A stretch of 63,432 bases of DNA, filler included, from Reticulomyxa filosa (Eukaryota; Protista; Foraminifera), in NCBI GenBank assembly GCA_000512085.1. It is 20 parts of 20 records of this genome, joined end to end, with 100 filler letters (N's around TTAATTAATTAA, not from the genome) between each part and the next. Parts side by side here need not be neighbours in the genome. Positions count along the whole stretch, not along the records: positions 19,393 to 21,107 come from ASPP01019288.1; 19 more parts are not named here. One strand, 5' to 3'. Of this stretch, positions 19,393-21,207 are shown in pieces (position 1 is the stretch's first letter; each line of letters opens with the position of its first letter). Made by a program: the position numbers and the translations under genes. A model generated the notes under the pieces. The model ran no database searches, was not told the origin of the DNA, and saw nothing but the letters and a program-made list of their open reading frames with translations.

Positions 19393-21000
19393 CTATTCCA
19401 AAAAGGTAGTTATACAATAATAGATTTGGTGCATGAATTACAAAAATATCTGACAACAGTAAAACAACCTAAAATAAAGGATAAGATATGATTATTAGAA
19501 AAAATTCAGCATAATTACAATTGAGATTATAATCGAGTATTTGATGTTGGAAGATTTACTATTTTATGTGATAATGCAGCCAAATTGTAAACAGCAGTGG
19601 CGGTAATGAAGAAAGGAGAGAAATTAATTTGATTGTATCTGAGGATAAAGAACAATCGAAGACACATCATAGATTTCACATATTAAATTGTTGACAACAT
19701 TAGAAGGATATACAGTAATTGAGAATCCAAAATTAAATCATTTGTTTTATGAACTATCAGGGCACGGAAGCCAAAGAATTCAGCAGAAGAAGACTTAAAG
19801 CAAGCCAGTGACGAAACATTAACAAAAATTAATGATATTATTTGTGAATGGATAGATGACAGATGAATATAATAATTAGCAAATCGTTATAAATCACGTT
19901 TAGATATTGAAACCACCACAGCTGTTCAAAAATGAGTTGGAAATTAATAATAATATGCTATTGAAAATGGCACAATTTGTGTATAAACAATTGTGTAAAT
20001 TCACTCCAGAAAAAATTAAAGGAAAAGCTATTTATGTAATTTTATATGAATATTATAAAAGATATATAATTGGAGATAAAAATCCAGCAAGTTATGCTGA
20101 TTTTGAATTAATATTACAAAAATCAAGAAAACAAGAAATGGAAAAAGATATTGCAATAGCACGAGCACTTGAAACATATATTCCATTATAAATAAGCAAT
20201 TATTCACATGTGGATGGTGAAAAATGACACATTTGATTGCCATCAACATGTTATTGAATTTTAAGAAACACTAGAAGAAAAAAAAATTGAACAATAACAG
20301 AAACAAAAAAGAAAAGTAATGATAATACTAGAGAAATCAGGATCAGGAAAAAGTATATTTTGTCGACATTTGGAAGAAATATTATAGATTAATTGTATAA
20401 ATGATTCAAAACAAAGTATTCCTATTTAATTTCTAATTCCTTATGCAATTTTAGATCGTGTATTTCTTGAAAGAACTAATTTTAGTAATGCTAATTTGAA
20501 TCATGTGCGTTTTTATCAAGCCTGTTTAACAGAGGTCAATTTCACAAATGCATCAATGAATGGTATCTACTTTGGAGAATATGCACATTTGAAAGGGCAC
20601 TCAGACGAAGTAAAGGGAATTCAATTTTCACCAGATGGAACAAAAATAGTATCTTATTCAGAAAAAACAATTCGAATTTGGACATATCATCAGAAGGACA
20701 AATTCAATTATTAAATGATGTATTTGATGCAAAATTTTTGTCAGATGGATATAAAATTATATTTAATTCATTGATGATACAGTCAAATTGTGGAATACGT
20801 TATCTAATGGACAAATTCAGAAATTTATAGGACGTGTAGATAAGGTACGTAAAATATAAATTTCACCGACTATTCTAAGTTTACATTGTACATGTGATGA
20901 TACAGTGCGAATACGGGATACATAATCTGGAAAGCAATTTTTTTCATATGAAGTAAGCGAATATGGGAGAACACCAATCCCTTTATAATGAAATGAAGAA
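19393..21000 (+). pseudogene. Decayed NLR-like gene: RelA/SpoT-type nucleotidyltransferase, P-loop (NACHT-like), pentapeptide repeats, WD40
   Basis: In order: PKIKDKI*LLEKIQHNYN*DYNRVFDVGRFTILCD, THHRFH, NHLFYE; VMIILEKSGSGKSIF at about 20315-20360; [28 protein letters not shown]; [22 protein letters not shown]. Many stops and deletions. Confidence 0.7.
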
Positions 21001-21207
21001 ACTTCATAGTTTCTATTCACAAGTTTGATGAGGAGCAATACATTTAAGATTGCATAAATTCAGAAAGGTTAGATGATTCAAGCGTTGCAGAAAGTTTTGT
21101 TACCAGCNNNNNNNNNNNNNNNNNNNNNNNNNNNNNNNNNNNNNNNNNNNNTTAATTAATTAANNNNNNNNNNNNNNNNNNNNNNNNNNNNNNNNNNNNN
21201 NNNNNNN

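Follow-up and report, generated by a model that had tools for sequence, protein, structure and literature searches.

Positions 19393 to 21107 of the window (the whole 63,432-nucleotide stretch of joined Reticulomyxa filosa DNA that was analyzed, from assembly GCA_000512085.1) are the entire 1,715-bp contig ASPP01019288.1. The contig holds what remains of a gene for a protein with a RelA/SpoT-homologue (RSH) synthetase-like domain, a NACHT nucleoside triphosphatase (NTPase), pentapeptide repeats and WD40 repeats. We consider it highly probable that this gene is a decayed pseudogene of a lineage-specific RSH-NACHT-WD40 family of about 100 copies, and that the intact paralogs would work like NOD-like receptors (NLRs), that is, as receptors built on a STAND (signal transduction ATPase with numerous domains) NTPase. 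The remnants are laid out as follows; L and P numbers designate paralogous loci and proteins, respectively.

19393-19800, + strand: remnant of the RSH synthetase-like domain, spread over frames 0, 2, 1 and 0; fold taken from the paralogs
19689-19690, + strand: junction of the ExQ deletion (51 nt lost), from the DNA alignment to L002
19801-20297, + strand: helical linker specific to the family, joining the RSH-like domain to NACHT; holds the sole long stop-free stretch, 19904-20188
20298-20434, + strand: N-terminal stub of the NACHT NTPase, with the Walker A remnant EKSGSGKS; weak nSTAND3/P-loop matches
20434-20435, + strand: junction of the NACHT deletion (1,309 nt lost, equivalent to L005 840-2148)
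20436-20579, + strand: pentapeptide-repeat stretch ahead of the WD40 array, as in the paralogs; from Pfam, with 72% identity to P0003 residues 687-769
20583-20975, + strand: about three decayed WD40 repeats; from Pfam and tblastn to the P0003 repeats
20976-21107, no strand: tail without similarity to the family; matches a soil-metagenome contig

The contig is 72% A+T, and a protein reading of it requires hops among all three forward frames, past many stop codons. The motif strings listed in an earlier note on this DNA were all found, though across three reading frames: P-K-I-K-D-K-I-(TGA)-LLEKIQHNYN-(TGA)-DYNRVFDVGRFTI lies at 19468-19563 in frame 0, HHRFH at 19665-19679 in frame 2, and HLFYE at 19739-19753 in frame 1. 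The RSH remnant retains the K-x-K...EK and D-V-G-R-F-T-I motifs, with the Asp codon at 19543-19545. The Walker A remnant EKSGSGKS occupies 20331-20354, and the apparent change of its first Gly to Glu is real, the paralogs carrying G-x-SGSGKS at this site.

Searches were conducted with stop-free pieces of the window or with intact paralogs. The stop-free piece 20430-20711 matched Pentapeptide (E 6.4e-9), Pentapeptide_4 (E 3.3e-6) and WD40 (E 1.2e-7) in Pfam, recovering the succession of pentapeptide repeats and WD40 reported in the earlier note. The piece with the Walker A motif gave weak P-loop and nSTAND3 matches, and the N-terminal stop-free pieces (21-41 aa) gave nothing in the Pfam or NCBIfam scans because they are too short. 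The 95-aa stop-free piece at 19904-20188, which is on record as a called gene, returned 27 matches in an exhaustive phmmer search of 1.84 billion representatives (best E, 1e-43). The matches that were looked up by name are R. filosa proteins; the two weakest of the 27, P0024 and P0027, were dropped as low-complexity false positives. Matches to paralogs with E values down to 1e-43 indicate that the coding resemblance is more than chance. An ESM Atlas feature search yielded nothing usable for the 95-aa piece and leads only for the RSH-like domain.

The N-terminal domain occurs in about 100 R. filosa gene models; two word-indexed searches detected it in 64 proteins with lengths of 600-1,880 aa and in 41 fragments shorter than these. 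Intact members are 1,700 to 1,880 aa long and consist, in order, of an all-beta domain with four cysteines (Cys4), the RSH-like domain, a helical linker, NACHT, a pentapeptide stretch and 9 to 14 WD40 repeats. The earlier note had expected intact paralogs with effector, NTPase and WD40 repeats in a single open reading frame (ORF), and such genes were recovered rather than chance fusions of remnants. L008 2922-8240 and L009 3409-8661 are each one stop-free frame, of 1,773 and 1,751 aa, respectively, that holds the Cys4 domain, the RSH motifs, Walker A and 7 to 14 WD motif hits, and P0006 is encoded by an uninterrupted single ORF of 1,081 aa. The middle region is NACHT (PF05729) in the paralogs, where it scores 30 to 43 bits against a Pfam cutoff of 26.7, and Pfam also gives Pentapeptide and 9 to 14 WD40 repeats in the long paralogs. 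Most of 67 long proteins have G-x-SGSGKS. The three-part NLR layout, with an N-terminal effector, a central NOD and C-terminal repeats, is therefore present in one polypeptide in the intact paralogs, and a NACHT domain with an intact Walker A is found in the paralogs but not in the copy on the contig. Public annotation describes the paralogs as "NACHT domain-containing" or "hypothetical."

The WD40 units are 42 aa each and mutually 46 to 62% identical within one protein (e.g., P0094 and P0010), and the differences among them cluster, by eye, at few positions, as they do in the NACHT-WD40 incompatibility genes of fungi. Regular units that vary at few positions fit a diversifying sensor, and they recall the concerted evolution and the hypervariable sites of fungal HET-E/NWD repeats. 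The regularity far exceeds that of ordinary WD40 propellers.

All carriers of the domain are from R. filosa, except P0030, a Joint Genome Institute (JGI) environmental protein. Relatives outside R. filosa were sought by searches limited to words or patterns. Pattern scans of JGI metagenome contigs yielded no confirmed relatives, and when 185,579 bacterial and archaeal genomes (GTDB) were scanned for a pattern, no close relative of the RSH domain emerged; both scans were word limited, which makes these absences weak evidence. P0030 itself (L007 316-1344, JGI sample 3300030741) is a 342-aa ORF that encodes the Cys4 and RSH domains and terminates ahead of any NACHT. Its identity to P0010 is 64%, and its RelA_SpoT match attains the Pfam gathering score. 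It may represent a form that stands alone, or else one more truncated copy, in a related organism.

We assessed the fold of the N-terminal domain with the intact paralogs. In Pfam scans run slice by slice, RelA_SpoT (PF04607) was matched by 58 of 62 paralog domain slices at E ≤0.01, the best at 3.1e-7, and no other family recurred. Two slices reached the 27-bit gathering score, those of P0019 (27.6 bits) and P0030 (27.0 bits). With profiles of 10 and 62 paralog domains, the only significant PDB chain was Tas1 (6ox6; E 0.005 and 0.003, respectively). In this alignment the family sequence K-L-K-D-K-E-R-L-L-E-K-I...F-D-V-G-R-F-T-I-L faces I-K-S-R-E-R-A-M-Q-K-I...K-D-L-A-R-N-T-I-I, and S-H-L-F-Y-E of the family pairs with G-H-K-Y-Y-E of Tas1. 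An AlphaFold2 model of one paralog domain had a mean predicted local distance difference test (pLDDT) score of 67, with 74 to 94 per 10-residue block over residues 1 to 100. Foldseek ranked against this model Tas1 (7e-6), Bacillus subtilis small alarmone synthetase 1 (SAS1), an exported Streptomyces SAS, RelP, Rel and RelSeq, the top RSH matches spanning E values from 7e-6 to 1e-2. The top 25 matches in VIA-align were all RSH enzymes (SAS1, Tas1, SAS2, CapRel, RelP, Rel, SpoT and RelA), with Z scores of 10.5 to 7.3, compared with Z scores of at most 7.2 for other nucleotidyltransferase folds (RsfS, Cid1, Pol mu/lambda and CD-NTases). RelA_SpoT clusters were also among the matches of an ESM Atlas shape search. 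A local hmmsearch against Escherichia coli RelA gave only a nonsignificant alignment across F-D-V, and the paralog domains had no match in the PADLOC or NCBIfam scans. Given the Pfam matches, the Tas1 profile match, the structural matches to RSH enzymes and the invariant catalytic residues described below, we regard the predicted RSH synthetase fold of the N-terminal domain of the intact paralogs as sound, in line with the RelA/SpoT-type domain proposed in the earlier note.

That note had placed the RSH-like domain at the N terminus. It does lie toward that end but not at its extreme, as the Cys4 domain of about 110 aa precedes it in the paralogs; the contig begins just past the Cys4 domain. 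Examples of the latter, all outside the piece under study, are at approximately 2922-3400 in L008 and at residues 51-160 of P0006 and 29-139 of P0010. The domain is all beta, with four invariant Cys residues in G-I-N-L-Q-G-x-C-x4/5-C-L-A ... C-P-x-C. Its AlphaFold model had a pLDDT score of 91. Foldseek gave no PDB match below E 0.09, and the best VIA-wide Z score was 6.4, to generic beta-sandwich, cupin or crystallin chains, none of them convincing. The Cys4 domain may be a new zinc-binding fold.

The alignment of 62 RSH-like domains revealed invariant residues at the second Lys of K-x-K and in F-D-x-G-R-x-T-I-L-C, S-x-T-H-x-R and E-M-Q-A-T-L. The Glu-x-Gln of the ExQ motif, which the earlier note had proposed to look for, is invariant in 62 of 62 paralog domains and deleted in the contig. 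The Asp of F-D-[IV]-G-R is likewise invariant in all 62, and its codon is retained in the contig. By inspection of order and spacing, the conserved motifs map to K254, D275, the G-loop/H323 region and E335-x-Q337 of E. coli RelA, and H-x-x-Y-E corresponds to H354-x-x-Y357-K. Of these, the Asp alone has alignment support, from the weak local match to RelA F-D275-V and from K-D-L-A-R of Tas1. We then estimated selective constraint by the Nei-Gojobori method on five loci. For the RSH segment, pN was 0.07 to 0.16 and pS 0.49 to 0.74, with omega at roughly 0.04 to 0.23 and dS saturated, and its pN/pS ratio was the lowest among the Cys4, RSH, linker and NACHT segments. In view of this tight constraint in dozens of paralogs and of the invariant metal-binding acidic residues, the RSH domain of the intact paralogs is most simply read as an active enzyme.

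By comparison with these paralogs, the copy on the contig is dead, as the earlier note had claimed. The reading path meets 11 or more in-frame stops upstream of the WD40 region and further stops inside it, and there are at least six frameshifting deletions. The RSH remnant has stops at 19489 (TGA), 19522 (TGA) and 19588 (TAA), 1-nt deletions at approximately 19619, 19679 and 19755, and in-frame deletions of 3 nt (approximately 19464) and 12 nt (approximately 19650). A 51-nt (17-codon) deletion at approximately 19689 takes out the strand with V-E-M-Q-A-T, the ExQ catalytic motif. In the linker there are stops at 19864 (TGA), 19870, 19873, 20189, 20262 and 20295 (all TAA) and frameshifting deletions of 8 nt (approximately 19904) and 11 nt (approximately 20220). 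The NACHT stub has a TAG at 20385, where the paralogs have Trp, and a TAA at 20427, where they have Tyr. It ends at 20434/20435 with a clean deletion of 1,309 nt, the junction being flanked by short microhomology of the TTCC type, so that about 420 aa, comprising the helical arm and NACHT beyond the stub, are gone. The WD40 array is cut to about three units, compared with 9 to 14 in the intact genes. It contains a single intact unit (20583-20681), the later ones being broken by frameshifts at approximately 20700 and 20770 and by TAA stops at 20712, 20857 and 20923. With the ExQ strand and nearly all of NACHT lost, the Walker A motif mutated, and the stops and frameshifts, this copy cannot make a functional protein.

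The closest locus fetched is L005, which carries the gene for P0003. DNA identity to it is 84% over 19691-20434 and 82% over 20435-20712; the other lesions relative to L005 are deletions of 1, 8, 11, 9 and 1 nt and a 3-nt insertion, and the N-terminal part differs from L002 by deletions of 3, 1, 12, 1, 51 and 1 nt. Substitutions relative to L005 amount to 12.4%, 7.7% and 16.7% at the first, second and third codon positions, respectively, as expected of a copy that diverged in part while it was still alive and under selection.

DNA comparison with the WD arrays of the paralogs shows that the family similarity stops at approximately 20956-20975. A 151-nt soil-metagenome contig matches 20975-21093 at 118 of 119 bases and diverges upstream of 20975, which places a junction at approximately 20975. 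The tail (20975-21107) does not belong to the gene family; it is a distinct piece, repeated or mobile. Judging by this match, R. filosa-like DNA occurs in the soil-metagenome sample.

Many other decayed copies exist in the family. At L002 3980-4001 and in the models of P0010, P0012 and P0121, frameshifts are bridged with invented introns, the model of P0010 joining two stop-free frames through an invented intron within NACHT. The sequence HITDF[IT]ILN[YC]MFQNM in P0121 and P0012 is the +1 frame of HHRFHNIKLYVPKH. The neighbor of the P0003 gene, at L005 5378-7537, encodes 712 aa in which WD40 repeats come after a TRAF-type zinc finger, another immune-style architecture.

The lesions of the contig might have been created by the assembly, if ASPP01019288.1 were a collapsed or chimeric consensus of reads from several paralogs and the lesions existed in no real copy. 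The family does offer about 100 similar copies for such a collapse, the contig is only 1.7 kb long in a very fragmented assembly with many "partial" models on contigs of 0.4 to 1 kb, and the sole independent contig that can be aligned, that from soil, covers the tail. A chimera nevertheless predicts blocks of about 100% identity, and no segment exceeds about 85% identity to any annotated copy, which indicates that the contig is not a chimera of known copies. The substitutions are distributed along the whole alignment, and deletions of 8, 11, 12, 51 and 1,309 nt together with at least 11 nonsense substitutions are atypical of read errors, so that the size and kind of the lesions argue against sequencing noise. 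As other decayed copies with independent lesions exist as well (e.g., P0012 and P0121), we consider an artifact very improbable. The copy might also be functional if, in the manner of ciliates, its stops were reassigned to sense codons and its changes of frame were due to tiny introns or programmed frameshifting. The A+T content and the presence of TAA, TAG and TGA all in frame would be compatible with this. However, the source organism is R. filosa, and paralog frames of 1,773 and 1,751 codons without TAA, TAG or TGA indicate the standard genetic code. Opposite the stops, the paralogs have codons for six amino acids (R, G, Q, K, W and Y) rather than for one, and the ExQ strand and NACHT are physically gone. 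Ciliate-type stop reassignment or Euplotes-like frameshifting is thus refuted by the six amino acids and the stop-free paralog frames, and we give a functional copy practically no credence.

Several results weigh against an active RSH effector in a large family of working receptors. Most PF04607 scores other than those of P0019 and P0030 are 16 to 26 bits, below the gathering cutoff. The AlphaFold2 model of the RSH domain is of middling confidence, with a pLDDT score below 50 in its C-terminal third, and hhalign found no significant similarity between the family profile and one sequence, the synthetase region of E. coli RelA (probability, 0.1). A sequencing-run search found no RNA runs with the window sequence. 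As several annotated paralogs are patched models of decayed copies, the count of functional genes is uncertain. Finally, inspection shows that the stacking Tyr of the G-loop (Y319 in N-G-Y-Q-S-I-H of RelA) is His in T-H-H-R-F-H of the family and that the "IRT" after ExQ reads "ATL"; these two changes may denote an unusual substrate or nucleotide binding only. The altered residues and the mostly subthreshold Pfam scores, together with the presence of a separate conserved Cys4 domain at the N terminus, would suit a degenerate nucleotide-binding or adaptor module, the output then going through the Cys4 domain or recruited partners. Against such a module stand the Asp, the Glu-x-Gln and the basic ATP-phosphate residues, which do not vary in any of the 62 domains, and the purifying selection on the segment, the strongest in the gene; moreover, the closest solved sequence relative, Tas1, is a very active enzyme. 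We therefore regard a nonenzymatic module as unlikely. The Tyr-to-His change, seen by inspection, argues for a noncanonical acceptor, not against the fold.

If the RSH domain is an active enzyme on a receptor chassis, the intact paralogs might function as follows. The WD40 array, with the pentapeptide stretch, would sense a ligand, whose binding would free NACHT for nucleotide exchange and oligomerization. Oligomerization would gather the N-terminal RSH domains and switch them on, and the RSH domain would move pyrophosphate from ATP onto the 3'-OH of an acceptor. Among the known stand-alone RSH toxins, Tas1 and FaRel produce (pp)pApp and deplete ATP, and FaRel2 and CapRel pyrophosphorylate the CCA end of tRNA (PMC11782079); with each of these outputs, the cytoplasm concerned would be arrested or killed. 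The likeliest acceptor would be an adenine or guanine nucleotide, with Tas1-like (p)ppApp synthesis and ATP depletion, or the 3' end of tRNA, as for CapRel and FaRel2. The part of the syncytium concerned might then cease to grow or die, in the service of defense or of self/nonself recognition. R. filosa is a large multinucleate plasmodium, which makes both defense against intracellular parasites and control of nonself fusion plausible triggers. A bolder version of this proposal is that R. filosa has an expanded NLR set whose RSH output, closest in sequence to Tas1, kills or arrests cytoplasm through alarmone-type nucleotide synthesis, ATP depletion or tRNA pyrophosphorylation, as a eukaryotic system of innate immunity or allorecognition, that it was assembled independently of that of fungi, and that it includes a Cys4 fold absent from PDB. 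We find this version quite conceivable but lean somewhat against it.

RSH enzymes are bacterial and plastid stress regulators and, as recognized more recently, bacterial toxins and antiphage effectors. To our knowledge, a RelA/SpoT-like domain on an NLR chassis has so far been described only in fungi and some bacteria, and the RelA_SpoT domain of some fungal NLRs is the sole reported instance of RSH in eukaryotic cytoplasm. A second, very large and strongly constrained family in Rhizaria, a eukaryotic supergroup distant from fungi, suggests that an NLR-triggered RSH pyrophosphokinase is a recurrent immune design, which would parallel the NLR/TIR NADase systems. The family supplies many natural sequences, intact and decayed, for learning which nucleotide or RNA the domain modifies; the locus on ASPP01019288.1 is of interest solely because it marks the turnover of the family by birth and death.

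We compared the family with known systems. In the literature collection searched, no paper linking Reticulomyxa with NACHT was found, and among the papers listed there for NACHT/NLR proteins in Rhizaria none is about such genes, judged by title and abstract. Among proteins of solved structure, Tas1 (Apk1), a type VI secreted (p)ppApp synthetase toxin of Pseudomonas aeruginosa, comes nearest to the family in sequence (E 0.003) and shares first place among the structural matches (Foldseek, 7e-6; VIA Z score, 10.4, with a root mean square deviation of 2.8 over 122 residues). Both share K-x-[RK]-E-R..[EQ]-K-I, D-x-x-R-x-T-I and H-x-[FY]-Y-E, at an identity of only about 18 to 19%. Tas1 is secreted by bacteria as a toxin and has an immunity protein; the foraminiferal domain, in contrast, is fused to an intracellular receptor chassis. 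CapRel and other toxSAS enzymes (7ztb, 9erv; review data in PMC11782079) combine a fused sensor with an RSH toxin in antiphage defense. Their RSH-fold effector is kept inactive in cis until sensing releases it, a scheme like that proposed here for the intact paralogs, and it then carries out tRNA 3' pyrophosphorylation or (pp)pApp synthesis. CapRel matches the family model structurally (VIA Z score, 9.5) but is regulated by a small C-terminal antitoxin-like domain, in place of which the family has a STAND NTPase and repeats; the foraminiferal proteins match no PADLOC model.

Bacterial STAND-related and ternary conflict systems occasionally have a RelA-type domain as their effector (Kaur et al. 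2020, PMC7159879). In these modular systems, too, STAND NTPases occur with pentapeptide or WD40-type repeats and with effectors that generate nucleotides, the RelA nucleotidyltransferase among them, but the systems are prokaryotic and often consist of several genes, whereas the family described here is eukaryotic. The layout also has a fungal parallel: the fungal NLRs surveyed in 2014 already included RelA_SpoT-NACHT-WD40 and RelA_SpoT-NACHT proteins (Dyrka et al. 2014, PMC4986451). The fungal proteins (e.g., in Gaeumannomyces graminis) have the same order of RSH-type, NACHT and WD40 modules, with highly regular WD40 repeats in both cases, and they likewise form variable multigene families in a syncytial or coenocytic organism. 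The R. filosa family differs from them by its rhizarian, foraminiferal host, by the added Cys4 beta domain and by the pentapeptide stretch before the WD40 repeats. The Cys4 domain, the pentapeptide stretch and the foraminiferal lineage are new here, while the layout of an NLR with an RSH effector was already known from fungi.

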